Shown piece by piece: positions 22,985-64,000 of a stretch of 64,000 bases of DNA. The notes under the pieces were generated by a model that saw nothing but the letters and a program-made list of their open reading frames with translations, searched no databases and was not told the DNA's origin. Within the stretch, counting starts at the first letter, position 1. Every line of letters begins with the position of its first letter. Source of the DNA: Chlorokybus atmophyticus (Eukaryota > Plantae > Mesostigma and Chlorokybus algae). Both the position numbers and the translations under genes were made by a program. The stretch spans positions 105,712 to 169,711 of the forward strand of contig RHPI01002048.1 of assembly GCA_009103225.1 (NCBI GenBank), given 5' to 3'.

Positions 22985-23025
<41 letters not shown>

Positions 23026-26848: not shown

Positions 26849-29230
26849 ATGGGCAATCCTCGGCCTCGTGCCACCGGCGGTGCGGGCCACGGCGCCCCCG
26901 CTGGGCCTGCAGGCGGCGAGCCTGACGCCGAGCAGCCCACTGTGCTTGAGAGTGCTTCGCTTCTGCCTCTGCACAAGCGTCTGCCCGATTTTCTTTCCAG
27001 CGTGAACATCAAGTACGTTAAGCTTGGCTACCATGCGCTCATCTCCCACGCATGGAAGCTGCTGGTCGTTCCCCTTGGTCTCGCCATCCTCGCAGAGCTT
27101 TCCGCCGTGCAGAAGGTAAAAAGCCTGCCACGCCTGGCTTGTGCAAGCATCTTGAACTTGGTGTAGCGTGCATGCGCGATCCTACTGGCAACAATCTTTT
27201 CCATTAAATCTTGCCTGCCTGCGCTGCATGCACTGGCTCCAGCATCTTCTGATTTCCCGGGCTAGCGTGACTATGTAAAGTTCAAGTATGCTGTCAATCG
27301 TCATCTTGCCCGCTTTTCTTTGAATTGTGAACTCGACTGTTCTGCGCTGTCCTTTTTTTCTCATTGGCAGCGCAGTGTGGCTGGTTAACCAAGCAGGCAA
27401 GTGCATGTCCTAGAGCTACAATGGTGTACACCTAGCATTGCCATAACTCACACGCGCTGGCACTTCGCCGTGGTTCAACAGCTGCTTGAACAAGTTGGCA
27501 TAGTGGTTGTTTTGGGCCAGTCGTTGCGGTGCGGGCGCTTAACATGCGCTGGTGGCTCTTTCAGGTCGATCTGCTCGTGCTGTGGGAGCATCTACAGTTT
27601 AATCTGGTTGCGGTTGTATTATCGGCAGCCGCCATAGTGCTTGCTGCAACACTCTATTTCGTGCTAAGACCTAGGCCCGTGTTCCTGGTAGACTTCTCTT
27701 GTTACAGAGCTGAGGACAAGTACAAGGTTAATCACGATGTCTTCATGGAGGGCACTCGGGGTGCTGGTTGCTTCACCCCGGCAAACATTGAGTTTCAAGA
27801 AAAGATCGCGCTGCGCTCCGGTTTGGGAGAGCACACGTACTTGTCAAAAGGGCTGATGACTGTCCCCAAGGACACATCAATGGAAATGGCCAGAGCCGAA
27901 GCAAGGGATGTTATGTTTGGAGGTACAGTATTGGTGTGTGAGATGCAGTTGTGCTACTCTGCGTGCAGTTGCATGTACATTGTGAGCATCATCCTGCCAT
28001 GATGATGATTACTTGCGTGCATCACTTGCAGCTAAGGAGCTGATTGGATTTGCATGCAGCTCTGCAGCAGCTGCTTGACAAGACGAAGATTCGCGCCAAA
28101 GACATTGATATCCTTGTTGTCAACTGCAGTCTGTTCAACCCCACTCCCAGTTTGTCGGCAATGGTTGTAAACCACTTCAAACTGCGGTCCAATGTACGCA
28201 CGTACAACCTCTCCGGCATGGGTTGTTCGGCTGGTGTTATTTCCATTGATCTTGCCAAGGACCTACTGCAGGTAAGGGGTTGTGTCGCTGCTCCAGCTCG
28301 CGTTGAGCATGCAATGGCCCTAATGTTTTATGTTGCTGGCAGACACATGGGAACTCTCTTGCGGTGGTGATTAGCACTGAGAACATCACGCAGAACTGGT
28401 ACTTTGGCAACCAGCGGTCCATGCTGGTACCAAACTGCCTCTTCCGTGTTGGTGGTGCTGCCATCCTGTTGTCAAACAAGCGCAGTCTTCGGCGGCGCTC
28501 CAAGTACGAGCTCTTGCACACAGTCCGCACTCACAAGGGTGCCGATGAGAAGTGTTACACCTGTGTTTACCAGGTATGTCCATTGTGCAACAGGCCCCTA
28601 CATGTGCAAGTGCATTGGTAGGCGGACAGTGCTTGTGCATGCCTGTGCAAGGCATGCATGGCAGGTTTTCTGATTGTCGTTGGTGCGCAGATGGAGGACT
28701 CTGAGGGCAACACTGGCGTGTCACTTTCCAAGGAAGTAATGGCTGTTGCTGGAGAGGCTCTGAAGACCAACATCACAACTTTGGGTCCTCTGGTGCTGCC
28801 CTTGTCAGAGCAGTTGATTTTCTTCGTTATGCTAATTGCACGGAAGATTTTGAAGATGAAGGTCAAGCCATATATCCCTGACTTCAAGCTTGCGTTTGAG
28901 CACTTTTGCATCCACGCCGGTGGTCGTGCAGTTATTGATGAGCTTGAAAAGAATTTGAGCCTCACTCCATATCAGACCGAGCCTTCTCGCAAGACCCTCT
29001 GGCGCTTTGGCAATACCTCGTCTTCCTCAATCTGGTATGAGCTGGCTTACTCGGAGGCTGCCGAACGAGTCAAGCGAGGTGACAGAGTATGGCAGATTGC
29101 ATTTGGCAGTGGTTTCAAGTGCAACAGTGCTGTGTGGCGCGCACTGCGCAACATTAAGCCTTCCCCCGATAGCCCATGGGCTGACGAGGTTGGCCAGATG
29201 GCCGTTGCCGGGAAGGTTGACCTGTCATGA
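26849..29230 (+). CDS. KCS: 3-ketoacyl-CoA synthase (very-long-chain fatty-acid elongase condensing enzyme), 5 exons
   Basis: Exons 26849-27115, 27565-27922, 28060-28271, 28343-28573, 28691-29230. [41 protein letters not shown], catalytic GMGCSAG, HAGGRA, GNTSSSS and [15 protein letters not shown]. Confidence 0.97.
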
Positions 29231-29747
29231 TTGATCAAGTAACCACAGCTCGTCTGAGCATAAGCGTTGAGGACATAGCGGCACCAACTCCATGTGAGTT
29301 TTGCACACAACAATAAGCAAGCAGCGCCTTGGGTCCACTCAGGCATGACAGGCTGTAAGTGACAGGCTGTCATGTGCAGTGACACAGCGTACATAAACAA
29401 GGAGGTAGCTACCTCAACCTAATAGGATTGTATTGACAGCTCAGACTCTGTAAGGATTGTGCTGGGCTGCTGTGGCCATGATTTTGTTCATTATTGCAGG
29501 CGATGTGTCTTGTGCAAGTTGTGCAGTCATAGTCATTCAATGCTTGCTTTCTGGACATACACTAGTATATACATTGTGTACGACGGTACACTGCTGGTTT
29601 GTTGATACCGCTACTGCCTCCATGAGCGGAACTGACTGTGACGCAGCTGTGAGCAGGTGATTAAGTAAAGTCAGTCATACATTACATGGGCAACATGGTC
29701 CATCGGGTCATACTCATGCTAACAGCGCTACACGGCTAGCTACACAA

Positions 29748-32030
29748 CTACACCAGCGCATCTAAAGGCAAACCAGCAACGTCCGCCAGTGCTGTCAATT
29801 TCGTCAAGCCAGACACTCCTTGTGCGGCTGCCAATGCCAACGCCAACAACGCGGAAGCCAGCGTGCGCTGCAGCGCAACAGCCACACGCTGCCGGTACTG
29901 CGTCACGAACCGGGACAGGTAGCGAGCCTCCAGACAGCGATCCTCAATCGCGCGACGCGCATACTGCGATATCACACCCACCAGAGGCTCGCCCATAAGC
30001 CGTATGTCTCCAGTGCCAGCGGTACGAATGTGTCCGTCGGGGGGCAATCGCTGTACTTCGCGCGCTTTGCCTGCTCCGCTGCCCGCGCACTAGCACCCGG
30101 CAAAGCACGAGCGCGTGTGGTAGTGACATTCAACAGTAGACGAGCGTCACGACCCATCTCCGCAGCCACGTTGTCCATGCGACGTCGACCGCCGCCCGCG
30201 CTGGTGTCAGGCAAATAGCCAACCTGCTCTCTGCTGACGGAGTAGCCGGCCTCGCGCATGATGTCGATGAGAGCGTCACGCACCACATTGTGAACCCGCG
30301 TACGATGACCCTCCCACATGCAGTCCGTGAGATGAAGACCTCATGCGTCGTGCAGCTCCTCACCGCAAGCGCACGCCTGCACGCCCAGCAACAGCGGGTG
30401 TGGAAGCCCCAGCAGGTGGCGAACGGCAGTGCGAAACTCAGATTCAGACATCTGCAACTTCCTCCGCACAGGCACGCATAGTAGCCAATATCCCGCCCCG
30501 GTGCCTGCCGCTGACTGCAGCCTCATAACATCATCAGGTGTCGCGGCTGCTACGAAGACGCCCTGACCGCAGAGTCTAGCCTGTCGGTGAGATCCTCCTG
30601 TACGCGGCGACACTCGCCAGCAGCAAACGCCACGAATGAGCTGCTCTGCATTGTACTGACTGGTAGCTGCTTCAATGCGAGACGCAGGTCGTGCTGGAAC
30701 TGCAAGGTGGCGGTTGCCACCTCGTCAATCGCGCTGGGTAGGGCGAACGATGCCACGGCTACAGGGATGAATCTGCGTTGAATGACGGAGGCAACCGCTG
30801 CTCAACCACCAATGAAAGCTGCGGGGGCCACGGCAGCACAACTCCGAATCCCGATGCCTCCCATCGTCACAGGCAGCGTCAGCTGTATGGCACCGGTGGC
30901 GTGTACGTCGGTGAGCTGCATGAGAGTGCCAAATATATCGCGCACAGCAGCGTCGAACGCTGTCAGCTGCTGCAAGAAGGTCTCGGACGGTGCCACTGTC
31001 CGCATGAGGTACGAGGGCGCGTGGCGATGCAACGGGATAATATCAGCAAAGCGACCTGTGTGTCTCTCATGCCTCCCAAAGTCTCCAACGTGGCTCGAGC
31101 GTCCGAAAAGCGCTCCTCATAGTATGCCTAAATACTTGCCGTCGTGCCCACGGGAACGCTCAATGGACTGATGCCCTTGGTGGCGATGGTGATGCTATTA
31201 GGGATGGGCATGGAGCGAGCATTGCGTGCTACGGTGCCGGGGCAGATCGCAACTGTCTTGTCCAACCTCACGCGCAGACCAACACCCTGCAATGCATCGC
31301 ACAACTCTGCCAGTGCGAGCAAGACGTCTTCGTCTGGGCCGATAAGGAATGTGTCATCAGCCGGTGACAGTCGGGAAACGCTGCACCACCTCCGAGCCGA
31401 CGCGGGTGTGCACCAAGGCATAGAGCAGGCCTGCTAATGGGTACCCCTGCCGAGTCCCTATGATGGAGGGTACGGTGATGACGGCGCCGCCGCGACGGTA
31501 AAACAACGAGGACGGCGCCGAGTAGAACAAGCGCACGAACGGGATAAGGTATGCGAAAGGTCCAGTTCGCAGCAGCTCAAACATGGTAGTACAATCAACA
31601 CTATTGAAGGCGTTTGCAACATCAAGATGCAGCAACATGTGGTCCGGATGGGCCCGGAGAGCAACTCTGATGCCTTGCGCGACACTCTCAGCGCCGTTGC
31701 GGGTGGCTACGCTGAATTGCATTGGCTCGAAGTAGGTTGCCGCAATGTCCCGATCTTGACACGCCAGCATCCGCACAATCAGACACTGCAATATCTCCCC
31801 CATAGCAATACGCACTCCACCAATGGGCTTGCGCAGAGCAATGAGAGTGCAAGCAGCCAGAGCTGTTGGTGCCACTACAGGGGCACTTCCTCCTGCTAGC
31901 AACGAGCATACTCGAGAAAGTGACCAGAACGCCTGTTGTACTGGACTTGGCACTACAGCTGTTCTGGACTCTGCATAACGACATGCAGACGGCACCACGC
32001 CAACCCGCACCAGTCCGTCATGTGAGCCCA
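29748..32030 (-). mobile_element. CRE-clade non-LTR retrotransposon (RT + CCHC + restriction-like endonuclease), 5'-truncated and decayed
   Basis: RT motifs LIALRKP.GGVR.IAMGE, QFSV..RNGAE, LDVANAFNS, GTRQGYPL, ADD, LP...GGIGI; zinc knuckle CACGEELHDA*GLHLTDC; RLE motifs HNVVRDAL, RRMD...LLLNVT, KRAKY, FVPLALETYG. Several stops and frameshifts. Confidence 0.85.
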
Positions 32031-33420
32031 GCCCACTGAACACGTATTGGGACCGGCAAGCCAACGTATAGCAGCACATTGCTGATACAGCCGACATGCC
32101 TCTGCGTGACAACGAAGCACTGAGGCCCCTGAATACCGTTCAACTTCATGAGCGCTACACCGCGCTGGAACCGGCGTTCAAATGGCGACAAGACCAAGCG
32201 GCAGCAATCGACGCAAGAGCGCACGCCCTTGCCAATGCTCGCGCTGGCGTTCTTCAACCCACAATTGCTAGCCCATCATCCAGTACGACACCTCTCGCCG
32301 GTGGGCCCGACATTGATTAGACGAGGGCGCTGGCCCAACAGATCAGGGGGGTGATCGCCCCGCTGCTACCCGCCTTGTTGGAAGACTTGCCTGACGATCA
32401 ACGGGATCCATGGAGAGGCTACCTCACACCGCAGAAGTGGACACAACGAGATGGAGCAGGTTCAATCGAAGAACAGCAACTTCGCACTGCCCTGTTGCGA
32501 CAAGCAACCATACTGCACCGACAGAAAGGCATCGGCCTGAGACGGATGTTAAGGATGCGAGAAGATGGTACTGCGGCTCGAGTAAGACTAGTGACTTTGC
32601 TAGTCACCAATCACCGCGCAGTCCCCCTGATCGCCTTCGGCACCGGATTGTTCTGGTTGGACGCCTTCCTGCGCTCGCTACGGCAAGCCTATGACGAGGT
32701 TGCCTCGGCAGCCACTGACACCCTAGAAGGAGCACAAAAGGCCATACTGAGGTTGCCAGGGGTGGAAGCAGCGCGGCAATGCAGACGCATCGAAGCTCCT
32801 TATGAGCAGCATGTCCAACAGCCAGAGATTTACCTCACTGTGCGGGCGCGAGCAACAACAGTGCTGGAGGTGGGAGTGGTCGATGGCAGATGGGATGCCT
32901 ACATGGAAGGGATCCTAAAGGTTCCCACCATCACCCACGACATAAGAGCGCGGCTCCTGCGCGCAGTGTAGCTCCTGCCCATGCCTTAAAATCACCGCTG
33001 ATGTGACGTGGTCAACAACCCAACAGCCACTTGGGAAGGTACGCTGGTCAGGAAGGCAGCTCATGCAATACGCTGGACTTTTGTGGAAGAACAGGCTGCA
33101 CGAGAGGCGGGCCCACAAACACCCGGTCCTCCAGGGTTTCCCCAACAGCCATTGGCTACGCCGCCAAGAATCACCCCGGCCACACAGAGACGCAATCCCC
33201 CTGCGCCAACCAGGGCAGCCACACGCAGCACCGCCAGCACCCAGGCCACAGCGTGTTTATCAACAGCCAAGACAAGGACGATTCGGGCCAGGCCGCGGTT
33301 AAGGAGGTGCTCAAGACCCAGCGGGTTGAGGGGCGCTTGCCGCACTGTGCTCGACACCACCGGAAGAGACTGCAGCACCAAATACCCCACGCACACGCTA
33401 CCGACGGTTCAAGCGGCTGC
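32030..33420 (+). pseudogene. Gag-like region of the DNMT-gypsy element
   Basis: Long coding-like frame (ORFs 32096-32320, 32351-32971, 33008-) broken by stops. A frameshifted CCHC-like knuckle C.HCARHH.KRDC lies near 33330-33375, directly upstream of the protease. Confidence 0.6.
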
Positions 33421-33440: not shown

Positions 33441-33880
33441 ATGATCGCCAACCAAGGCAAGCATGTCACTATTAATGGACGAGCACTCAAGCGGGTGATG
33501 CTATACTCCGGAGCCCAGCCCGTCATCATCGGACGTTACCCTGCACGTGACCTTGGCATCACCAGCGCTGAGCAGATGCCGTGCCCATACGTACTCGACA
33601 CCGCAACCAACAACCATGACAAGGTGATTGGCATCACCAAGCAAGCCCTCTGCATTCGCTTGACAGGAGTGGACCCGTCCCATAGCACCGAGGTCATACA
33701 GAAGTGTGTGGTCACCGATGCAGTATCCTTCCACCTGTTGTTGGGACAGGACTTCAACTTCCCTGTTGGCATGGGGCTGGACTGCTGGACAAAGAAGGCA
33801 TGGTTTCGTTCTCATTGGGATGAGGAGGACGGAGAGGTTCAAGGATATCTGCCTGTCGAGATGGTGGCTCGCACTCGTTC
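33441..33880 (+). pseudogene. Retroviral-type aspartic protease (catalytic D mutated to Y)
   Basis: VMLYSGAQPVII (for LDSGA) and the C-terminal LLLGQDF motif. Confidence 0.75.
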
Positions 33881-34200
33881 CCACCGGAGGTCAGCTGCCA
33901 CAGCTACCTACAAGTCGTTGTCGGCAACCACTAACAGGTCAGCTGCGACAGCCACCCATAGGTCGGGTTCGACAACCACTGACAGATCATCTGCGGTGGT
34001 CACCCACAACTTGGACCAAGACTCTCCTATCCCATATGACGAGTCTCACGAAGATGCCACTGAAGAAGTGGCCCACCAGAAACCAGCGGAACGCCGGTAG
34101 CGCGCACACGTGGTCGCACATCTACTACTGACCAGACCATGGCTCACTTCACGGTTCCCTCTCTACAAGGACCAAGCTGCTGTCCAGGAACAACACCGGG

Positions 34201-34485
34201 TGTCAGGAGATGGGGTGCTCCCTCCTCCCTTTAATCCCCTACCTCATCACCACCACCAGCCACGTCGCCCACGCCGCCGTCGCCAGGGGCAACTGCCGAA
34301 GCAGAAGATCCCCTGGCTAATGGCGGCCGCTGCGTTAGCAGCGTCGCCATGCGCGCTAATATCGACATGAGACTCATGTCTCATGTCGATATTGGTGTTA
34401 CAGATAAGTAACACTACATTAGGGCCTTAACATAGGTTAACGGCCCTAATATGGCTTAATAGGCTGTACAATCCCGTTGGGACCC
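34201..34485 (+). repeat. Direct repeat, copy 1 (pol linker + hairpin cassette + chromovirus LTR end)
   Basis: Matches 40173-40456 with scattered substitutions and indels (low-to-mid 90s % by eye). Confidence 0.9.
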
Positions 34486-37420
34486 CTATTTCATCCTAAA
34501 TAAGGGCGGGGAACCTCTATGGAGGTAGCACACCGTTACATTCCCCCCCACTTAGGTTTCAATGTCCTCATTGAAGGGTTAGCAAAGCCCCCCCACGAGT
34601 AAAGGAACGAAAGTAGTATGAGAATCAGGGCCGAAGCGGTAAAGATGTCTGCCAGCACCCTTTTACCGTCCGCGTGTGGACACAGTACTCCAGTACCCCC
34701 GAAGAATCTCCTGGCAATTGGTAAGATTCCTTTCGGGCTCCCTTGTATTGTGCTCAACACCATACCCTTTCCATTTCAGCAAGTAAAACGGCGCGTGTCC
34801 GCATCGAGGCTTACGATGAGTTAGGATTGCTTCCACCTCATACTCGAAAGTATCGTCGCCATCCACTGCAACGGGGGGTGGAGGAGGTTGAACCCGACCG
34901 TCAGAACGGTACGGTTTCAGTACACTCACATGAAACACATTGTATATGCGTATCGATTTTGGCAAGTTCAAACGATACGCGTGAGTGCCGACCCGATCAA
35001 TCACTCTTAACGGGCCTATCCAGCGAGGGAAAAACTTGCGGGTACCCACTCTCTTGATGAATATATTTTGGTGCTGAGAAGCACCGAACAGCCCATATCG
35101 TAATTGGCCTCTCTACGATGCGCATCAGCATGGGCTTTTTGTCTGTCTTGCGCTGCGCGCAGACAGTCCTTTGCCAACGCCAACCTATCCTGCATGGCCG
35201 AAGCCATCTCGTGCGCTGCAGGTATGCGAGTCATGTCGGTAGCGGGCAACTTAATGTTTGCATGACTCAGTGGATGCACTCCATAACTCAAACAGAACCG
35301 GGTTTCCTGCACGCTCTCTTGCCATGCATTGTTAATCGCGAACTCAGCCATTGGGAGATAAACATCCCAATCAGATTGGTTCGGATTTACATAATGCCGG
35401 ATGGTTTCCTCAATCACTTGATTGGCGCGCTGTGTCTGACCATCCGTCTGTGGATGGCAAGCTGTGCTCATGTTCTGCTGAATATGTAAGAAGCTGCATA
35501 GCGACTTCTAAGATTGAGCTACAAATCGCGGATCGCGATCAGACACGAAGTTACGAGGCAAGCCATGTAACTTAAACACAGAGGCGACAAAAACCATCGC
35601 TAACTCACGGAGCCTATTTCCGTGCGGCAAGGGACAATGTGAACCACTTTTGTTAAACGATCCACAAAAACTGCAACCAAAGTGTGCCCTAATGCTGTCT
35701 CCGGGAGCTCAATAATTGGGTCCATACTCACACTTTCCCACTTGCCATCAGGAACAGGCAAAGGTCGCAGCAACCCAGCGGGTTTCTGACGTAACGGCTT
35801 GTCACGCTGACATTTGTTACACGTGTCAACATAATGCTTCACGTCAACAGGCAACGATGGCCACCAGTACAACTGTTGCGCTGCTTTAGTAGTCTTGCGA
35901 CCCCCAAAGTGCCCAGTATACAGTGGATCGTGTACTTCAGCTATGCATTCTATGCGCAACCCAGCGTGGTCAGGTATCACCAAGCTGGCGCTCATATAAT
36001 ACAAGTTGTCTCTTTTGTCAAGCTTTTGTACATTCTCTTGTATAGCGAACCATGGGTCTAATGCATACCCCTGTAAAACAGCTTTCACAAATTCATCATC
36101 AGGAGGCAGTGTACCCTGCGTTGCAAGCAACTGCGCACGCATAACTGCCAACAATGACGGACAGCGACTCAGAGGATCGGCCATGTTGGTTCTGCCCGGC
36201 CAGTATACCCATTCAAAGGTAAACCGCGACAGGAACTCATTTCCAGCGAGCTTGCCTACGCGACAAGTTTAGCTGTGTTGAGAAGTACACCAACGGGTTG
36301 TGATCAGTCACCACTGTTACCTGAACTCCCTCGAAGTAACATCGCCATGTTACAAGAGCATGCACTATACCAAGCAATCCTTGCTCAATGGTAGTGTAGT
36401 TCACCGCTGCTGGGATGAATCCTACTCTCATAAGCACATGGTCGGCCATCCTATAGCAATACTGCACCACACCCAAGGGTGGAGGCATCGCTAATCACAG
36501 TGAAGTGTTTATCCCAATTTGGCAATGCCAAAACTGGTGCCGAAGTCAAAGCCAGCTTCACTTGTTGCATAGCAGCTTCTTGTGCTGCTGTCCAAGAGAA
36601 TGGGGCATCCTTTCGCAACAGTTTTGTCAAAGGCACCACAACTATAGAGTACCCCATCACAAAATTGCGAAAGTAGTTTGCCAACCCCAAGAATGATCGC
36701 AACTGATGGATGTTCTTAGGTTGAGGCCAATCTTTTACCACTTGCATTTTGCGAGGGTCAGGTTTGACACCCGCACCACTCACAATATGCCCTAAGAATG
36801 GCAACTCTGTCTTGCAAAGTCACACTTTGACAAGTTGGCAAACAAGCGATGTATACGCAGCAAGGCGAACACCGCTTTCAAGTGCTGCTTATGCTCTTCC
36901 TTGGTTTTACTAAAGACAATGATGTCATCCAAGTAAACCATAACATACTTGCCAAGTATGCCACCAGAAATCTTATTCATTTCCTTTTGAAACACTGCGG
37001 GCGCATTAGTCAATCCAAAAGGTAACACTTTGTATTGATAATGGCTCGAAGGTGTTCTGAATGCTGTCTTGTAAATATCAAAAGGATGAATCCGGATTTG
37101 ATGATACTCACTTGTCAAGTCCAACGTAGTACGCATTTCCCGACAGTTTATCAAACACATCATCAATCCGGGGCAACGGGTATCGATTACTTACCGTAAT
37201 CTTGTTCAAAGCACGGTAATCCACACACAAGCGCAGCTTTCCATTCTTTTTCATCATAAACAAGATGGGCGCGCCAAAGGGTGAAGAACTTGGTTCAATC
37301 AATTCCCCCGTGTAAGATATTGGGCATGGTGAGACAAACAAGATATTCGTGCACTTGGAAACACCTCTTGCACATCCACTTGTAAGTAAGTAATGGTAGG
37401 CAGTTTCACGGTAAGGTACC
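34396..37420 (-). mobile_element. Chromovirus (Ty3/gypsy) 3' half: RT-RH-INT-chromodomain, PPT and 145-bp 3' LTR
   Basis: LRLCVDYRALN, LDLTSEYHQ, PFGLTNAP, YLDD, SDAS..GCG, TDHNPL, GHFG..KT, SMD, TDGQT; chromodomain [23 protein letters not shown]; PPT AGTGGGGGGGAA; LTR TGTAACGG...TGTAACA at 34540-34396. Confidence 0.92.
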
Positions 37421-37858
37421 TTTCATAGATATCAATGAATGTGGTTGCAGAGCATGGTGAGGCACAATGTAGTCATTGCGAGCAAGCCCAACTTGAACAT
37501 GGTAATTTTTTAATGCCGCTGTCTATGGGGGATGTTGTACTGTTCCAATTTGTACTCAAGTTTGTGAATATTAGTGTGATCGCGTTGAAACCCTTGAAGC
37601 GTGTTTTTAACATTGTGAAGAGCAATCATTCACAATTCTACAGGAGGCTAGTTATGTTACAAGAGATTGTGCATGTACACATTGAGATAACGGTTGGGTT
37701 TATGATCACGTTATTATACCAATGTACATAAGGGTAGTAGATTGTTTGCAAAGATACTTCACCTCCCACATTGCATTGCAATATATGCACATGCACATTG
37801 ATGAACTATGTGACATGTTGCAGCATGTACACCGCAACTGTTAATCAACAATTAACAT

Positions 37859-40172
<2,314 letters not shown>

Positions 40173-40456
40173 TGTCAGGAGAGGGGGTGCTCCCTCCTCC
40201 CTTCAATCCCCTACCCCAACACCACCACTAGCCACGTCGCCCACGCCGCCGCCGCCAGGGGCAACTGCCGAAGCAGAAGATCCCCTGGCTATGGCGGCCG
40301 CTGCGTTAGCAGCGTCGCCATGCGGCTAATATCGACATGAGTCTCATGTCGATATTAGCCGCATGGTGTTACAGATAAGTAACATTACATTAGGGTCTTA
40401 ACATAGGTTAACGGCCCCAATATGGCTTAATAGACTGTATAATCCCGTTGGGACCC
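40173..40456 (+). repeat. Direct repeat, copy 2, containing a 49-bp perfect palindrome
   Basis: Matches 34201-34485. The palindrome at 40318-40366 has 24-bp arms and a 1-nt loop. Confidence 0.9.
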
Positions 40457-40457
40457 T

Positions 40458-41535
40458 TGGGACCTAAATGGCCACAAAACACACTTCGTGCTTTTGTGGC
40501 CTAGTGGTCTGTTACACCAGGTGGCCACTTGAGTAGTGGAATTTCACGTATTCCGGCGACAACAAAGTGTCACCGTGTTGGAACTATCTGGAGGAATAGG
40601 TAGTGGCCTCGCCGCTGTCCTCAACACCGGCGCGACGGTCACCAAGTACTTCTACTGTGACCCTGATCTCCATGCACAGATTGCCCTGGGCCACCACCTG
40701 CGCCACCTACACAAATGCTACCCGCAGCGACTGCCGCTATCGGCACTGCAAGGCAGTCTGAAGGCACTGCCACATGCCATCCGTTTAATTACTGCGGATC
40801 ACCTCCTAGCGGTGGGCAACATCGACCTGCTGATAGCAGGATGGGAGTGTCAAGCACATCCAGAGCAGGCAGCGACCAAAGACTCGCTGATCCTCGCTCA
40901 CAACTGTTCTGGGAACTGATGCGTGTCATTAAGATCCTGCAGAGCAGCCAGCTGTCCAGGCCTACAGGATACATCATCGAGAATGTGCACTTCGAGGACG
41001 ATAAGCGCCATCACGTGGCCAACAGCTTCCGACAGGTGTGTTCTTTATTAGGGCATCCTCTCAGAATTAATGCAGCGCGGCATGGCTCCCGGGCTCAGCG
41101 CGTTCGCGCCAAGTGGACCAACCTGGCAATAGTTGAAGATCTCTTTGCTGCTGAATATCTGCACAGCAGTAGTCCACGCGATCTGACCGTTGACACTATC
41201 CTGGATTCTGGGCGCACAGCACAACCTGTCACCCAACACAATCACCAGCACTTCTACCCGTGCAACCAGCCTGGTCAACTACGTCGTGCGCTCCCCACTC
41301 TGATGTCTTACCCGGGTTCATACGCCTTCCGCAACCACGGCTCAGGCATGGTGTTGGATTCCAACACAGGCTAGCTAGAGGAACCCAACGCGCGTGAGCG
41401 CGAACGCGCCATGGGCTTCTCTCAAGGCAGCATCACAGGTTCCACGCTGACCAACAGTCAGCAATGCCAACTATCGGGACGCGCCATGGATCAGAACAGC
41501 ATGGTATGGTTACTGGAAATGTGCTTTGCTCTTCA
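40458..41535 (+). pseudogene. C5-cytosine DNA methyltransferase domain inside retrotransposon pol
   Basis: Motif I VLELSGGIG; IDLLIAGWECQ (motif IV, Cys retained); after a 1-nt frameshift near 40856, SRAG...DPRSQLFWE; motif VI GYIIENV; motif VIII HGSRAQRVRAKWTN; ALPTLMSYP; EEPNARERERAMGF; motif X GRAMD. Intronless and runs into RT in frame after a TAG at 41372. Confidence 0.92.
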
Positions 41536-41789
41536 AAACCGCCATGTGTCCTTTCAGGAGCTCGGATACCTGGCAGCGGGGTGGGCAGATCGCGTGCAAG
41601 AGACCAAAGCGGCACACACCGCCCTCGAAATCGCCCATATGGAGGAGCAGGCAGCAGTCACTGTGAATAACATCCCAGTGATCGCCAACGCCACCTCTTG
41701 GTCCCATGCCATAAGACCACTGACTACAAGCCAAACGCGAGAACAACTGGAGGCTTTCCTCAACAAGTGGAGAAGTCAGTTCAATTTCA

Positions 41790-44448
41790 GCGTACTGGGG
41801 GTTTGCTCAGTCTACCAAATGGACATCAAGTTGGTGGACACCGAACCGGTGTTTCGACAACAGTACCGACTCTCCAAGTTGGAAGAAGACTTGGTGGAGC
41901 AGAGGTGCAAGGCTCTGCTAGATGCAGGCCTGATCGAGGAGTCCACATCGGACTTTGCGGCCGCGACCGTCATGCCCCTGGAATAGGATTTAGCAAGCAA
42001 CTGGACAGACTGGGGCATGTGCGGCGACTATCGCCCCCTCAACAACAAGACCAAACAAGACAAATATCCAATGCCTACTGCAGAAGGTATCTTTGATGAT
42101 GTAGGAGACCGCACCGTTTTTAGCATCCTGGATATGCGACAAGGGTACAACCAGACCGTCCATCAAGGAGGAGGACAAGCACAAGACCTCTTTCTGGGGC
42201 AACCGGCAGGTGTACCAGTGGAAGGTCATGCCCTTCGGACTAACGAACGCTCCTGCCAAGTTCCAGCGCGTCATGAACAAAGCCTTGAAGGCGCTGGACG
42301 TCGCGCGATGCTACGTTGACGACATTCTCATCTTCAGTCGCAATAACGACGAGCACCTGCAGCACATCGAGGAAGTGCTTGAAAGACTCAAGGAGGTGGG
42401 GATGACAGTGCACCCCGACAAGTGCACTTTCTTCACTCGCAAGGTACCCTACCTAGGGCACATGATTGTGCCCCACGGTGTGTACGTATAGCAGGCATTG
42501 GTGGAGGCTTTGGCGGCTATCCCTGCTCCCACAGACCTTACCCGTCTGCGTGCTTTTCTGGGCCATGCCAACTACGCTCGCTGGTTCGTGAAGGACTCCG
42601 CAAAGATCGCGCGACCCCTCAACGAGCTTCTGGAGAAGGAGGTGGAGTTTGCCTGGAAGGAGCCACAACAGCAGGCGTTTGAGGAGCTAAAGGGCAGGCT
42701 CACCGCCGCTCCCATCCTGCAACGTCCTGACTACAACAAGCCCTTCATCCTCCACACCGACTGGAGCAAGCTTGGGATGGGGGCTGTGCTGGTACAGCAC
42801 GATGAAAACAAGAAGGAGCGGGTGGTGTCGTACGCCAGCCGAAGCAACAACAGCGCTGAGGCCGATTACAGCAGCTACGAGGGGGAGTGCCTCGCTGCAG
42901 CATGGGCTATCTTCTTCTTCAGACCTTTCCTCTTTGGTCAACAATTCCAACTGGGTACCGACCATCAGCCACTCAAGTGGTTGATGACCAACTAACATCT
43001 AATAGGGAAATTTGCTCGCTGGGCCCCGTTGCTGCAGGAGTATGACTTCGAGATCGACCACCGCGCAGGCCTCACCAACCAGGACACTGATGGCCTCAAT
43101 CGCAACCCTCGCCGCAGTACCAACAATGCAACCGGAGCTCGGCACGAGCTCGGCCCCGCAGCAGCAGCTCCCACCATGGCGGCCATGTTTGCTGTGACCG
43201 CGTTACAATCAGGGCGCCAGATCAACACCACCTCAACGACAGAGGAGATTCTTGCCCTTGAGTCTACCGACCCCACAGTGACCACACCCCTAGGGGACGT
43301 CCACGCGGTCGCTATCGATGTCGACGACACCGAGCTGGCACCCACCGACACCAGGCAGGACATATGGCTGGACAAGCCATCACTCTCTTTCCTGCAAAGT
43401 GGCCGGTTTCCCTCCAACATGAGTGCACGAGAGAAAGATCGTGTCAGTCAACGCACCCGCCACTGTTGGTGGGCGGATGACAAGGTGTGCCGCCGCGTTA
43501 TGGACAAGGACAAGGAGGTGCCAACACCAGCCACACGCGAGGGCAGCATCGCTGCCCTCCACACTGAGCTTGGACACTTCGGTGTCAAGCGTACCGTCAG
43601 CCTGGTAAAGGCGCAATATTGGTGGTATGGGCTGTCTAAACAGGTGCAGGGGTTTGTCAGTCGTTGCCAGCAGTGCGACATGGTACGCGCCAGCCTTAAT
43701 ACACGTTCTATTGCCGAGGACTCGACATCTTCGGAGACTTGGCAGCCTCGGCACGGGGCAACCGCTACATCCTGGTCATGATCGAGCACTTCTCCAAATG
43801 GGTGGAGCTGGTGCCATTACCCGACAAGAGCAGCAGAGGGGTGTCTCGAGCCTTCCGCTCCCATGTCCTCAGCCGGTTTGGCAGCTGCGCTGAGGTCATC
43901 ACCGACCAGGGCACTGAATTCAGAAGGGAGTTCGATTCCCTTCTAAACAGATGCTACATCAATCATCACCGCACTTCGCGTGACCACCCTCAAGCCAACG
44001 GTCTCGCCAAGCGGACAGTACAGACTATCAAGAAGACACTCCGCAAGTACGTGCTGGAGTATGAGAGGTGGCTCTTGGATACCGACTGTTAAAGCAGGCG
44101 GCTTTGCGCGAGTACAACCCATACTACCTGCTCTTCGGGCGTCCGCCATTGCTTCTTCTTCTTGCACAGCAGGAAGCAGACCGTGTGGTGAACAACCTCG
44201 ACGATCCCGACAGGATGCACCACAACATTACCACACGCGCCACGCTGTTCGAGCAAACCGTCCTGATGGCCTTCAACAACCTGCGCATCGCACAGCACCG
44301 CGACACCCTGCGCTGCAAGCGCGTGCGGAGCGGCTTCTACAAGGAGCGTCAACGGCGGTTTCAAGCAGGGGCCTTTGCCTACCGCATGGCAGCCACCAAA
44401 GACACGCTCGACACTTCGGTGCGCCGCACCGTCTACAAGGTACTTTAG
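41790..44448 (+). pseudogene. RT-RNase H-integrase of the DNMT-gypsy element
   Basis: MCGDYRPLN, LDMRQGYNQ, MPFGLTNAP, YVDD, FLGHANY, TDWS, YEGECLA, TDHQPL, HTELGHFG..WW..C..C, TDQGTEF and QANGLAKR (catalytic E to K). Stops, frameshifts and a deletion near 43710. Confidence 0.92.
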
Positions 44449-44592
44449 GTGTACCCCACTGGAGTGCTGGATCTTCTTGGTCAGAATGGCGAGAGGTTGA
44501 AAGACAACATGGTGAACTGCGCGCCATGTCACCTCCCTTACATAGCAGGCTTCGCGCGCATCCAGCACCCTCGCCCCGCCCGCAGCACACGC

Positions 44593-44727
44593 TGTGAACG
44601 CTGCGGCAGTGCCGGCGACGACGCAGTCATGATGCTCTGCGATGGTTGCAACAAGGGCCTGCATTGCTACTGTCTGGAGTCCCCATTGGACGCAACACCC
44701 ATGGAGGAGTACTGGTGCGACAATTGC
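44593..44727 (+). CDS. PHD finger at the integrase C-terminus (part of pol)
   Basis: CERCGSAGDDAVMMLCDGCNKGLHCYCLESPLDATPMEEYWCDNC has an intact C4HC3 pattern with the conserved W. Confidence 0.9.
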
Positions 44728-44806
44728 CGCACCAACAGTCCTTCTCACCTGCGTTAACAGCTGAGCTCTGGAGCTAGAACCTCCCCAGAAGCTCGGAGGG
44801 GTGGCT

Positions 44807-46564
44807 TGTTGACTGTGTGTCCTACAGCACAGCATGTACACTAAGGAGGACACCGCCTCCACATGTCCGTGTGACTCAGCACCGGTAGAAATGGATTTCG
44901 GCAAATCAGGTTGGATCCGCAACTTTGTAATGGACGAAGCCGGACATTATTTGCGGATTTCGCAAAGTTTATAACGGATCCGTATATATGTTGTAGCTGC
45001 AGCCAGAATTTTATTGCGACCGGTCACAAACGGCAATCCGCCGGTGATGATCGTAAGTACCGGATCCCCAACAATGTTAAGGATGCGGTGTTTACGTAAT
45101 CAAGGGTTCAGGCCGTGAGAAAGACTTGTACAAGTCGCAATTACAATTGTGACCAATTCGTTAACAGTGCGTCTTTACTCCCGAACGCAATTGAGGACTC
45201 GACGATAATATTATAATGCATTCAGGTTGCATGCTAAAGCTGTACACATCATCATTGAAATCGTGACCGGCTCCATCAATGATACGAGACTTTATACTTA
45301 ACAACGCGAAACGCTAAGATCGAGCCTTCCATTGATATAAACCATATTAATGTTACGACCACATCATTGCCAAATTGTCAGTTCAACCCCGCGGCCTGCT
45401 AGTAGCAGGCCGCGGGGCAAGCAAGTAGAAGGCTGCGACTTGCATGTATAATTATTGGTAAACCGTGGTAGCACATGAGGTAAACATGTAAAGACTTGAC
45501 TAGAACTCCGCAACCAACCTTGCGCCAGCAGGTGACGCAGGGCGCATAATGCAAACATTTGCCGGTCTTCCGCGCTGTGATTGGACAAAACGGCAAGTCG
45601 AACAAAGTCTCCCTCCCCAAGTCACCTTTATAGTGGTACAGTCCACCTTTATCTTTTTGATACCAGTGGTATATATATGTAAATACCGCGGTGTATATAT
45701 GTATATACAAAAATATATATATATGTACGACTATATATGTATATGTATAAAAACATATATTTGTATATGTATATATATATACATATATATATGTATATAT
45801 ACATGTATATATACATATATATATGTATATATGCATATACCGGTAGTGCCGTTGTATGCAGCTGTTGGTGCATGCGTGATGCATGCATTGCGGCATGTGA
45901 GACAATTTGAGGCAACAGGTAGAGGTTGTATGCTTTACCAATGCGATAATGGGCGTCTCGTGTCGTCGTAGTCTAGTTGGTCGGTTGTTAGGTCGTATGA
46001 TGTTGCTTAATCCAACAGGTGCTGCCGCGCAGGTTCGAAACTCGATGGAGACACGAAAATCCTTATGCTGTGGCTCTTTGGGTTTTTCGCCGCGAACTGC
46101 GGCCATAACATTTCTGGTTAGATTACGCATCAAGATTAATCTCCTTGATACATGATCCAACCAAAAAATGGTTTATGATGTGACTATAATTAAGTTCAAA
46201 AAAAGACGGATACCGAACTTAATGCACACCAGCTAATTGACCTTAATAGCAGCTCGATATCAAACAAAGTTGTGGCTGCAGCCGCAAAGAGTGCAAAAAT
46301 GGATATGTTGCTTGCATATGGATCTCTAAGTAAGTTATAGCTGAATCTCCAATTAATTTGTGGGCAAGGCCGAACTGTTGGGGGGCCATTTTTACAAGTG
46401 CAGCGGCAGTGGAGCAGCTCCAGCAAGCACTCCTTGCCATACGAGCTGGGTTATCTTTTACTGTTGCTATACGTTATAACATGTTGCAGCGACAGGGTTA
46501 GCAAGCCTGTCTCTTCCTGTAGCGGCCCGAGACAGTGTGACCCTCGACTCCCCTCAACCCGACA
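44807..46564 (+). repeat. 3' LTR of the DNMT-gypsy element, split into 44807-44879 and 46401-46564
   Basis: The two halves match the uninterrupted copy at 47163-47400. TG...CA ends, preceded by a PPT. Confidence 0.85.
44880..46400. mobile_element. CACTA/CMC-like DNA transposon (1,521 bp) inserted in the LTR
   Basis: Imperfect TIRs CACCGGTAGAAATGG and CACTTGTAAAAATGG (12/15), with 3-bp TSD CAG at 44877-44879 and 46401-46403. Contains an internal (TA)-rich tract at 45665-45838. Confidence 0.75.
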
Positions 46565-47162
46565 GCTGCCATGCCTAGTGCCTACACATACCAGCCTTCA
46601 TTGGGCATGTCTACATCGAAACCGTCGCCCGGCCTACCAGCATACCAACGCGCGCGCGTCCCTGACCAGTAGCTAGGTCATGACTTCAGGGTAGCTCACG
46701 ACTATAGCCTACATAGGCACCGCGCGTAGCTGTTCAGTTGTGAGTTCAGTTATAAGTAGTGTTCTATATTGAAAGACAATCGATGTGGAAAAAGCCTCGA
46801 TATGACCGTTAGCGTATGTTCTAAACAGTCATAATTTGACTTGTATAAGTGGTCACAGTGTTCACCGGATCAGCTGGTGACACTGTGAGTGAAAAAGCTA
46901 AGAGCTTGTGAAACGACTTGAACTGCGAACACGCCATCCCGGTTACCAAGAACCCCCTCACTGTGTGAGAGCCTGTGCATGCTCGTGTGTGCATCATGAT
47001 TGTCATCGCTGTGAGCTTGATGTGCCTGGTTGCAGTGTGTTTGTTGGCATCAGTCAGGGCATAGTATCCACGTGTTGCTTGCTCATTCACCTCGCTTAAC
47101 AGTGTAACACAATTTTTGCTCATGCAAAGAACTGTGTAAACGGCACTACCTATAAAGTGGCT

Positions 47163-47400
47163 TGTTGACTGTGTGTCCTACAGCACAGCATGTACACTAA
47201 GGAGGACACCGCCTCCACATGTCCGTGTGACTCTCTCTGCGGCAGCGGAGCAGCTCCACCAAGCACTCCTCGCCATACAAGATGGGTTATCTTTTACTGT
47301 TGCTACATGTTATAACATGTTGCAGTAATAGGGCTAGCAAGCCTGTCTCTTCCTGTAGCGACCCGAGACAGTGTGACCTTCGACTCCCCTCGACCCGACA
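47163..47400 (+). repeat. Second, uninterrupted 238-bp LTR copy preceded by a PPT remnant
   Basis: The first 71 nt are identical to 44807-44877 and the rest matches 46403-46564. GTGGCT precedes both LTRs. Confidence 0.85.
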
Positions 47401-51454: not shown

Positions 51455-53792
51455 ATGGCTATGGCCGCAATTCAGCCCCTGGTTTGGCAGCGCGGGTATT
51501 CCGGCGGGCCGTACGGCGGCGGACCTGGAGGCGGCCTCCTGTTTGGCTACTACAGCAATCAGTCCTTTGCGGCTCCCCTTCCGGTGGACGGCGCTTCTCC
51601 AGCGGAATCAGGCGACAACAGCTCTGCCGCTGCCGCTGCGGCGCTATCTGCTTGGCTGGGCTCGGGCAAGCGCGCGAGTGATGATACAGGTCAGTGTTTG
51701 TCTTTAGTGTGTCATCAGCTATGAGCTTATCTAAGCATCCGATTGCCGCAGCATGGGTTTTGCGTACCTTGACTTGACTGCTTGCAATTAGCGGTGGCGC
51801 GTGTTTGTGCCGCCGATTGGCTTCTATGGAGCTTGTGTAAGATTGTGGTCCCAAGGTTTTGTGCTGGCGCTCACATTTTCATATTTTACGTGACCGGCAG
51901 TTCCCTTGACTGTGTTTGCCGTAAGACGTGCTAACGAAGCTTTCCCGGGTTTTGCCCCGTTGCTTCTGCTTCAGCCTCCATGCATGCCTTGTGCTTGTGC
52001 TTCCGGTTGCCGCGAATGTCCATTGTGCTTCACTTCATGAATGATATCATGGGTATGACGTTGGGTGTAATATTCACATGAATCTGTTGCAATCTGGGCG
52101 ACTTTTACTGGTCAATCACATAAGCAGTGGCTGCAACATTGCTGTTGCTAGAGTTACCAGATGACGGCGGGTTGTGTTTGTCAGTGATTATGTGAGCAGT
52201 TTGTCATGTATGGTTGAGTATCCGCAGCACTTTGTGCGTGCAATCTCACATTATTAGCAGTTGTTTCAATGCTTGACTGGTTTGTGCGAGGAAAGCTGCG
52301 CGAGACCATTGCTGACGGCCAGGGGCATGTACAGGTCCTTCGCCGCTGAAGCGTGCAAGGTCTGGTGTTGGGGAGCTTACAGAGCAGCTTGATCAAGCGC
52401 AGCTGGAGGAGACTAGGGGAGCCGCACCTGCAGGCGCGTTGTCGCCAGCAGGTTACCCTCAAAGGCCAGGCGAGAAGGACTGTGTTTTCTATTTGCGGAC
52501 GGGGACGTGCTCTTTTGGGGAGGGTTGTCGTTTCAACCATCCCGTCCGTGTTGATCGCATGGACAATATGGCGACCACTGTGCACCCTGAGCGTCCAGGG
52601 CAGCCAGAGTGTCCTTACTACATGAAGACTGGAACATGCAAGTACGGCGCAGTGTGCAAGTTTCACCACCCTTCCATTCTTGGGTTGCCAAGGGAGCCTC
52701 CAGAAGCCTACGGATCTGGGGGGCCACCTGCACCTCTCAACTCTGCTGGCCTGCCCCTGCGGCCTGGAGCCCAGTTGTGTTCTTTTTTCATGAAGACCGG
52801 CACTTGTAAGTACGGATCAGGTTGCAAGTTTGACCACCCGGAAGTAGTATTGCGCCATGGTGCAGCGCCCGCCCCATACCCTGGCCCCTTTGTGCAAGAC
52901 CTGTCGCACGCAGCGCCCAGCTTCCTCGAGCATCAGCTTCGACCACATGTGTCGGGCATGCAGCCACCGCCACAGATGCTTCAGCACCAGCATTCGCTAT
53001 CTAGTTTACTGCCCGCTGACTTTCCCTATGCCTCGTCTCAGTCGTTTCCCTCTCCGAACCAGCCCTTCGCTTCAGTGCTACTGGCCCCTGAGCCCACTGG
53101 ACCCCTGCCTCAACGCCCAGGAGAACTTGACTGCGCCTTCTACATGAAGACTGGGAAATGCAAGTATCTATCTTCCTGCAAGTTCAACCATCCCCCTGGC
53201 ATTCGCCCTGGTCAGCCCGGTGATTATCCTATAGCTAAACCCCCTGTAAAGCTTAGTGCCACTGGTCTTCCACTGCGCAAGGGAGAACCGGCGTGTGCGT
53301 TCTATATGAAGACAGGCAGTTGCAAGGTATCACGTGGTTTGCAAACTGTGATGCGGACATTGCAATCTGTCCTGGTGTGTGAAAACAGTTGTCCTGTAAC
53401 CAAGCTAGCAAAAGCTGCTGTTTTTTTTTCCTGGTTTTTCGCTCAAGTATCTCAAGTATCTCGCTCAAGTGAAGCTGTAATTTTATTTTTGGTGGTTTCC
53501 TTGCCCACTGATGTCTTGTGTTGCGCAGTTTGGGGCTACTTGCAAGTTTGATCATCCTTCCCCGGCAGATGCTGTGGCTGCTGCTATGGCCGCAGCAGCG
53601 GCCGCCGCCAACTTCAATGGGATAGTGGTTGCTGTTGGAGAACCTCATGGTGTATCACCACCAAGAGGAGCGAGCCCTGGCGTTGGACCAGAAGGTAAAC
53701 ATTGGGGTTTTTAGTTCAACCTGGTGGCATGGCAAGTGGCCGAATGGTTGTGGGTTCCTGACACGCTGGCTTGTGCAGAGCGCATGAGTTGA
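51455..53792 (+). CDS. Tandem CCCH zinc-finger RNA-binding protein (plant ZFN/HUA1-like), 5 fingers
   Basis: Exons 51455-51689, 52335-53326, 53529-53694 and probably 53779-53792. Five C-x8-C-x5-C-x3-H fingers, each preceded by a P.RPG-type lead-in. Confidence 0.92.
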
Positions 53793-58578: not shown

Positions 58579-58665
<87 letters not shown>

Positions 58666-58666
58666 N

Positions 58667-58711
<45 letters not shown>
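58579..58711. repeat. (GA)n microsatellite spanning an N at 58666
   Basis: Direct reading. The length is unreliable because of the gap. Confidence 0.95.

Positions 58712-63964: not shown

Positions 63965-64000
<36 letters not shown>
63965..64000. repeat. (GA)n microsatellite at the window end
   Basis: Direct reading. Confidence 0.95.

Follow-up and report, generated by a model that had tools for sequence, protein, structure and literature searches.

The genome of Chlorokybus atmophyticus, an early-diverging streptophyte alga, contains a Ty3/gypsy retrotransposon copy whose pol frame ends in a genuine PHD finger. The copy, which we call element B, is decayed and 5'-truncated and lies in a 64-kb stretch of contig RHPI01002048.1 (the window, that is, the whole 64,000 nucleotides analysed, to which positions refer unless a locus is named); the finger is encoded at 44593-44727 on the forward strand. 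The same element encodes a DNMT3-like cytosine-5 DNA methyltransferase (DNMT), and the finger is standard equipment of the whole retrotransposon lineage to which element B belongs. On sequence and modelled fold, it groups with readers of the unmodified histone H3 tail (BAZ2A, ATXR5, KDM5 PHD1, UHRF1, BHC80 and AIRE). We lean towards the view that it serves as a chromatin-tethering module of the integrase, in a lineage that also carries a DNMT3-like methyltransferase.

A canonical PHD finger closes the pol frame

Translated in frame 0, the segment reads CERCGSAGDDAVMMLCDGCNKGLHCYCLESPLDATPMEEYWCDNC, with eight zinc ligands spaced C-x2-C-x11-C-x2-C-x4-H-x2-C-x14-C-x2-C (C4HC3). An initial annotation made from the bare sequence had announced a perfect C4HC3 finger at the integrase C-terminus, and this is borne out. 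Pfam PF00628 (PHD) matches with E=3e-9 and 37.2 bits (cut-off 24) along its entire profile (1-47/47), which corresponds to residues 49-93 of the open piece 44449-44754. A regular expression for the C4HC3 pattern finds this single site across the six frames of the window, and has no match in 200 block shuffles of the window. The finger and its immediate surroundings are as follows:

44446-44448, forward strand: in-frame TAG that splits the integrase C-terminal region from the PHD piece (sequence and translation)
44515-44532, forward strand: N-C-A-P-C-H motif, about 20 residues upstream of the PHD (alignments A1 and A4)
44593-44727, forward strand: C4HC3 PHD finger (Pfam PF00628, alignment A3, PDB searches, model and fold search, shuffle control)
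44755-44757, forward strand: TAA stop of the pol frame, nine codons past the last PHD cysteine

The piece bearing the finger shares its frame with the C-terminal piece of the integrase (44068-44445), and in homologues the reading is continuous at the position equivalent to the TAG. All nine positions that are invariant in the family, the eight zinc ligands and Pro41, are kept in the window finger. It differs from the consensus of the family at three conserved sites that are not ligands: Leu precedes the zinc-binding His in place of Trp or Tyr, SPL stands where the family has PPL, and W45 is Tyr. The upstream motif has the family form H-x3-C-A-P-C-H, with the first His replaced by Asn in the window; A, P, C and H vary little or not at all in the two alignments, and C-A-P-C-H is found in all relatives. 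It may form an extra zinc knuckle or third zinc site, comparable to the pre-PHD of UHRF1.

The three departures from the consensus, together with the fact that this copy is dead, are what can be said for a chance pattern of cysteines or a feature private to this decayed copy. That explanation deserves practically no credence: it is refuted by the Pfam score above cut-off, the ligand alignment, the shuffle control (0/200) and the recovery of the finger, with invariant ligands, in 86 of 86 related loci, and the fold is modelled with confidence.

Element B and its decay

The finger had also been claimed to sit on the same pol as the methyltransferase. This is correct: DNMT, reverse transcriptase, RNase H and integrase are found upstream of it in the implied order, and element B reads PR-DNMT-RT-RNaseH-IN-PHD on the same strand throughout. 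Its recognisable parts, besides the finger, are:

33441-33911, forward strand: aspartic protease (PR), the 5'-most recognisable part of element B (tblastn map)
40533-41545, forward strand: DNMT3-like cytosine-5 DNA methyltransferase domain (Pfam PF00145, E=6e-9 on joined pieces)
41810-42488, forward strand: reverse transcriptase (RT; Pfam RVT_1, E=1.2e-27), with a stop at 41984-41986 and a frameshift at 42141-42154
42492-42992, forward strand: RNase H (RH; Pfam RT_RNaseH_2, E=1.9e-33, and RT_RNaseH, E=8.8e-29), flanked by stops at 42489-42491 and 42993-42995
43359-44445, forward strand: integrase (IN; Pfam Integrase_H2C2, E=1.4e-13, and rve, E=2.1e-9)

The protease is 40% identical to that of the related locus L003 and matches Pfam Asp_protease_2 weakly (E=0.006); upstream of it, neither a gag gene nor a 5' repeat was found within the window. 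The integrase comprises an H2C2 zinc domain (43359-43700), a catalytic core (43700-44059) and a C-terminal region (44068-44445), with frameshifts near 43700 and at 44059-44068. The methyltransferase, 40-48% identical to metagenomic DNMTs, is interrupted twice, by a frameshift that lies in 40853-40889 and by an in-frame stop (41372-41374). Its motif IV (40840-40852) reads W-E-C-Q, where most relatives have W-P-C-Q; the Pro to Glu change was considered as a further lesion and dropped, because the intact relative L071 has the identical motif. A Pfam scan found no Chromo match in element B.

Nine lesions have accumulated over 40533-44757 (4225 nt), namely four frameshifts (40853-40889, 42141-42154, near 43700 and 44059-44068) and five in-frame stops (at 41372, 41984, 42489, 42993 and 44446). 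At this density, a stretch of 135 nt escapes any lesion with a chance of about 0.75. That the finger is intact in spite of lesions elsewhere, as first remarked, is thus true but uninformative about selection on the window copy, and the TAG at 44446 in any case severs the finger from its integrase. The window copy is a dead relic from which nothing is made now, and it matters only as a pointer to its family.

The finger persists across the retrotransposon lineage

A search with the integrase and PHD together returned 250 homologues, with top identities of 43-46%, from Klebsormidium nitens, the liverwort Calypogeia fissa, Chromochloris, Tetrabaena, Tetraselmis, Closterium and many metagenomes. 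PF00628 is present in about 47 of the roughly 50 homologues that cover at least 90% of the query. A scan of metagenome contigs, run with patterns of the integrase core and C-terminal region from which the PHD was excluded, gave 80 loci. The possibility, raised with the initial annotation, that most family copies lack the finger did not hold: with a family PHD profile, a PHD-homologous region directly follows the integrase in all 86 related loci that extend at least 230 nt beyond it. The strict C4HC3 pattern, with all eight ligands retained, occurs in 25 of 83 loci; we rejected this count as a measure of prevalence since many copies are decayed and it undercounts. The eight ligands and one proline never vary in fingers whose identity is otherwise 30-45%. 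The window copy itself is only 36-46% identical to any relative found, and the related copies range from this early-diverging streptophyte to lineages that are bryophyte-like or chlorophyte-like.

Additional C-terminal features are found in homologues among P0049, P0043, P0045, P0055, P0076 and P0079. P0049 shows a motif resembling those of S-adenosylmethionine-dependent methyltransferases (DPCAGSGG) after the integrase-PHD, and in several chlorophyte-like homologues the PHD is instead followed by some 60 residues that form a conserved domain (WG...YRGA..RP.YF.V...DG). In Calypogeia fissa, an integrase-PHD gene (L005; CBCUJL010000007.1, 10141-11580) is preceded by 10 kb in which RT, RNase H and DNMT are all missing; it is either a copy that lost its 5' part or a gene standing by itself, possibly domesticated. 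As an anecdote on insertion context, a convergently oriented host gene has its 3' end about 1.5 kb from that of the element in both K. nitens loci, L004 (DF237449.1) and L088 (DF238006.1).

The finger resembles readers of the unmodified H3 tail

The solved fingers closest to ours are the same whether the window sequence or the family profile is used: those of KMT2C/D and CHD4; PHD1 of KDM5A/B/D and Lid; and those of WSTF, ATXR5, PHF12, BAZ2A/B, DPF2/3, KAT6A/B, PHF21A (BHC80), UHRF1/2, ORC1b and AIRE. No finger of the ING, BPTF or TAF3 type appears in the top 60 PDB matches to the family profile. Most of the closest solved fingers bind the unmodified N-terminus of H3, and methylation of lysine 4 (K4) abolishes this binding; we took reader specificities from PDB entry titles and established knowledge. 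PHD fingers that read trimethylated lysine 4 (H3K4me3) have a cage Trp two residues before the zinc-binding His, a position occupied by Gly in the window finger and in the family consensus alike. The window finger lacks this cage Trp and does not qualify as an ING/BPTF/TAF3-type reader, and an acidic pair (D14 D15) precedes its first strand (VMMLC). The comparison of readers of unmethylated lysine 4 (H3K4me0) with H3K4me3 readers, which had been proposed at the outset, thus places the finger in the unmodified-H3 class, with Gly instead of the cage Trp.

Modelling agrees with this placement. In an AlphaFold2 model of 44458-44754, the predicted local distance difference test (pLDDT) score is 86-92 over the finger, which superposes at 0.9-1.1 Å on the BAZ2A PHD bound to unmodified H3 and on the ATXR5 PHD bound to H3. 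Foldseek puts the modelled finger about 1 Å from those of BAZ2A, ATXR5 and DPF3. A DNMT3-carrying Gypsy lineage also bears on its integrase, in every related copy examined, a PHD finger of the unmodified-H3 class. The finger has no similarity to the ADD domain: its Pfam matches are PF00628 and a weak PF23004, and no ADD chain occurs among its PDB matches.

Membership of this class need not entail histone binding. The finger could instead be a protein-protein module unrelated to histone marks, serving contact with a host factor, nuclear import, integrase assembly or an interaction with its own polyprotein. UHRF1, of the same class, binds PAF15 and Stella, which mimic the H3 N-terminus; the invariant upstream C-A-P-C-H hints at a larger zinc module, and some relatives bear further conserved domains past the PHD. 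However, the nearest solved fingers are mostly H3-tail binders, the model superposes to about 1 Å on these fingers with their peptide bound, and the integrase C-terminus is the site of known chromatin tethers. We consider a non-histone role quite improbable.

Methyltransferase and finger: one system or two?

We looked for the methyltransferase in the 42 loci that were testable, with 4.3 kb or more of sequence before the integrase core, and it is present in 38 of them. The window order, PR-DNMT-RT-RH-IN-PHD, is shared by 33 loci; a second order, RT-RH-DNMT-IN-PHD, with the DNMT immediately before the integrase, is found in L058, L071, L002, L090 and L091. Conversely, the PHD is present in all three DNMT-first loci that extend far enough downstream (L002, L003 and L092). 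The second order forms one uninterrupted open reading frame (ORF) in L071 (2178 residues) and L058 (1891 residues). In three near-intact loci from different samples, a single in-frame stop splits gag-PR-DNMT from RT-RH-IN-PHD (L003, 2911-2913; L022, 5083-5085; L092, 3489-3491). This stop may be a site of programmed readthrough, in which case the DNMT would be made in far greater abundance than the integrase-PHD. Finally, L061 (24-4409) has an intact RT-RH-IN-PHD ORF of 1461 residues, and the DNMT was undetected at either of its known positions. L022, L092, L071, L058 and L061 are near-intact relatives that could be used experimentally.

The best solved match of one relative's DNMT is the catalytic domain of DNMT3A/B/C (E about 4e-8). 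A search for DNMT homologues returned no K. nitens protein, and a DNMT-first scan of viral contigs yielded only distant phage methylases. The apparently intact copies L071 (3612-10148) and L058 (4614-10289) have a tail of about 370-400 residues after the PHD without a Pfam match, and in L058 a G-patch domain precedes the integrase.

Does the joint presence of a finger and a methyltransferase reflect joint action? In host DNMT3, the ADD domain reads unmethylated H3K4. The PHD and the DNMT3-like domain could likewise be one functional unit that rebuilds this ADD-plus-catalytic logic: reading of H3K4me0 by the finger would recruit or license the DNMT there, with the new insertion or its surroundings as a possible target. 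We find this explanation unlikely. The class of the finger does match the mark read by the ADD domain, but the finger has no likeness to that domain. The two domains have been retained together across a deep clade (DNMT in 38 of the 42 integrase-first loci, PHD in 3 of the 3 DNMT-first loci), and in 15 elements pairwise DNMT identity follows that of the integrase C-terminus (r=0.89), the integrase core (r=0.85) and RNase H (r=0.90). However, such a correlation is as expected for co-inheritance, which any two pol domains would show without interacting.

The layout of the protein also cuts both ways. The single ORF of L071 and L058 makes a DNMT-IN-PHD polypeptide conceivable, and under joint action a single polypeptide with this adjacent order would do both jobs. 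In the window order, though, some 1,000 residues of RT, RNase H and integrase stand between the two domains; protease processing would normally separate them, and the stop of L003, L022 and L092 puts them at the ends of different frames. L061, for its part, retains the PHD with the DNMT undetected. As to the product of the enzyme, DNMTs of this retrotransposon kind carry out de novo CG methylation in yeast (PMC5890265); the observed/expected CpG ratio of element B (0.78) does not differ from the window average (0.76), hence shows no special trace of self-methylation. We doubt that the PHD and DNMT were kept together since before the split of the sampled lineages because they form one system. 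If they did, the retrotransposon would have assembled its own counterpart of host DNMT3 targeting, with which an element both chooses and sets its own chromatin state. Of the initial idea that DNMT3-like logic is reassembled from separate parts, the parts stand, as the finger is not ADD-like and falls in the H3K4me0-type class, while joint action is not supported.

A possible tether for the integrase

The role that we lean towards, a chromatin tether, would operate as follows. In an active copy, the integrase would bear the finger at its C-terminus, and the finger would bind the free H3 N-terminus where lysine 4 is unmethylated. The integration complex would thereby be kept on nucleosomes remote from active promoters, and new insertions would be biased toward silent or non-promoter chromatin. 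The DNMT would be a second module of the same element, made separately. Chromodomains, which occupy the same place on the integrase, target integration to heterochromatin (Gao et al. 2008, cited in PMC6673714). The proposed role would be analogous to that of the chromovirus chromodomain, which acts via H3K9 methylation. L061, with its PHD and no detectable DNMT, speaks for independence of the finger from the methyltransferase.

Several points weigh against a tether. The near-universal co-occurrence of the DNMT (38/42) could mean joint action. The top sequence matches, KMT2C/D, are not classic H3K4me0 readers, and the class also binds non-histone ligands, the PDB listing the UHRF1 PHD with PAF15 and with Stella. 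That the finger binds histones, and how it would steer integration, are inferences, and the mark that it would read is deduced from resemblance. Because the query used to rank the 80 metagenome loci by similarity included the PHD, a slight bias to PHD-bearing copies is possible. The pooled ratio of non-synonymous to synonymous substitution rates (dN/dS), about 0.33 among ligand-intact finger copies, is biased low because only copies retaining all ligands were used.

A PHD that chooses insertion sites, the alternative offered in the initial annotation, is better supported than a coupled reader and writer. The finger is a concrete candidate, open to testing, for a second way in which histones may guide integration (H3K4me0 rather than H3K9me), and it prompts the question whether a single element could read as well as write the epigenetic state at the site where it lands.

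Relation to known systems

We regard element B as a divergent Chlorokybus member of the Gypsy-DNMT3 kind. It resembles KnitGypsy-Dnmt3 of Klebsormidium nitens and other streptophytes in having a Ty3/gypsy pol that contains a DNMT3-like methyltransferase, and the best named homologue of its integrase-PHD is a K. nitens protein (43% identity). The A-coding-B-A-B split direct repeats reported for KnitGypsy-Dnmt3 (de Mendoza et al. 2018, PMC5890265) are shared by relatives of the window element. It differs in its host, Chlorokybus atmophyticus, and in its distance from any relative (36-46% identity). The two K. nitens contigs with an integrase-PHD (L004 and L088) both start inside the integrase, and no DNMT was found on them; the link to KnitGypsy-Dnmt3 thus relies on best hits, on the repeat layout and on L039, a Klebsormidium-like metagenome copy in which the DNMT precedes the RT. 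The main text of PMC5890265 and its supplements, as far as examined and Figure 4c aside, do not mention a PHD finger. Gypsy-DNMT3 is named again in a preprint (10.64898/2026.05.21.726589); on Gypsy-DNMT3, Chlorokybus and PHD, de Mendoza 2018 and this 2026 preprint were the only literature found.

The same preprint describes EpiLTRs, long terminal repeat (LTR) elements of Cymbomonas and Euglena with DAM, DNMT and chromodomain, and its authors treat them as separate from Gypsy-DNMT3 (10.64898/2026.05.21.726589). In these LTR retrotransposons, too, a DNA methyltransferase occurs together with a reader of histone marks, but that reader is a chromodomain rather than a PHD, the enzyme is DNMT4-related rather than DNMT3-like, and an adenine methyltransferase is added. 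Chromoviruses, one of which (element A, below) is nested inside element B, likewise fuse a histone-tail reader to the C-terminus of a Ty3/gypsy integrase, presumably for insertion-site choice; the reader of element B is instead a PHD, with unmodified H3K4, not H3K9 methylation, as its predicted mark.

Compared with host DNMT3, the element has a catalytic domain whose best solved match is DNMT3A/B/C and an H3K4me0-class reader in the same set of gene products, but this reader is a canonical PHD rather than an ADD, lies on the integrase far from the catalytic domain, and is not accompanied by a PWWP domain. The cellular readers of unmodified H3 (BAZ2A/B, ATXR5, KDM5A/B PHD1, BHC80/PHF21A, AIRE and UHRF1) are the nearest to our finger in sequence (family profile E down to 1e-20) and modelled fold (rmsd about 1 Å, target template modelling (TM) scores of 0.83-0.88), yet identity is only 28-38% and the window copy has Leu for the Trp or Tyr before the zinc-binding His.

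PHD fingers are recurrent accessory domains of transposable elements, especially in green algae. REM1 of Chlamydomonas (Perez-Alegre 2005) and the CR1 long interspersed nuclear elements (Kapitonov and Jurka 2003) are both reported to carry one. Chlamys Penelope-like elements carry one as well (PMC8557442). REM1, CR1 and Chlamys are of other element classes or have the finger at other protein positions, and none is reported with a DNMT. Gypsy elements with DNMT3, PHD fingers in transposable elements, and LTR elements joining a reader to a methyltransferase (the EpiLTR preprint) are thus already known. In the text of the papers searched or read we did not meet an integrase PHD universal to the lineage or its unmodified-H3 class, nor the reach of the lineage to Chlorokybus and bryophyte-like genomes, nor the two alternative DNMT positions.

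A nested chromodomain element

The protease of element B is separated from its DNMT by a second retrotransposon:

34201-40456, forward strand: element A, a nested chromodomain Gypsy of 6.3 kb

Its terminal repeats (34201-34485 and 40173-40456) are about 92% identical, and its flanks read CCGGG|...|TTGGG. Pfam matches comprise RT_RNaseH, Integrase_H2C2, SH3_Tf2-1 and Chromo (E=8.9e-17 for the latter). The body of element A is peculiar in that 34456-36765 is the reverse complement of 37859-40172 (97% identity), so that two 3' halves (RNase H, integrase and chromodomain) stand head to head between the terminal repeats.

The 3' repeats of element B

A split-repeat layout, A-coding-B-A-B, is clear in the relatives L042, L062, L067 and L082. 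Downstream of the finger, the window contains the following repeats:

44801-44877, forward strand: repeat B1, first part, 100% identical to 47157-47233 (self-BLAST)
46403-46564, forward strand: repeat B1, second part, 91% identical to 47239-47400
46565-47156, forward strand: presumed repeat A2, placed by analogy with L042, L062, L067 and L082
47157-47400, forward strand: repeat B2, the likely 3' end of element B (self-BLAST, layout of relatives)

The interrupted B1, A2 and B2 fit the 3' part of the layout; a sensitive search of the window found no second copy of A2 that could be A1, its 5' partner. B1 is interrupted by a 1.5-kb AT-rich block with microsatellites (44878-46402), around which no target-site duplication was found; a TA/CA-rich, low-complexity palindromic block lies inside this interruption.

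Other features of the window

Two more RT-like ORFs are present. The first (12602-14260, forward strand; 552 residues) has a YVDD motif and zero Pfam matches; the second (31357-32112, reverse strand), just upstream of the element B protease, matches RVT_1 weakly (E=0.0017). A pair of direct repeats of 1146 bp (23357-24502 and 28419-29564) is 100% identical. We did not retain it as a young LTR element: an assembly duplication is at least as likely, given the N at 23356, the poly-C at the left junction and ends that are not TG..CA. Long (GA)n/(TC)n microsatellites and the TA/CA-rich block are located at 58579-58711, 63965-64000, 22988-23020 and 45670-45840. An exon-like ORF at 52439-53300 is identical (100%, full length) to the JGI Chlat1 protein Chrsp80S07802.

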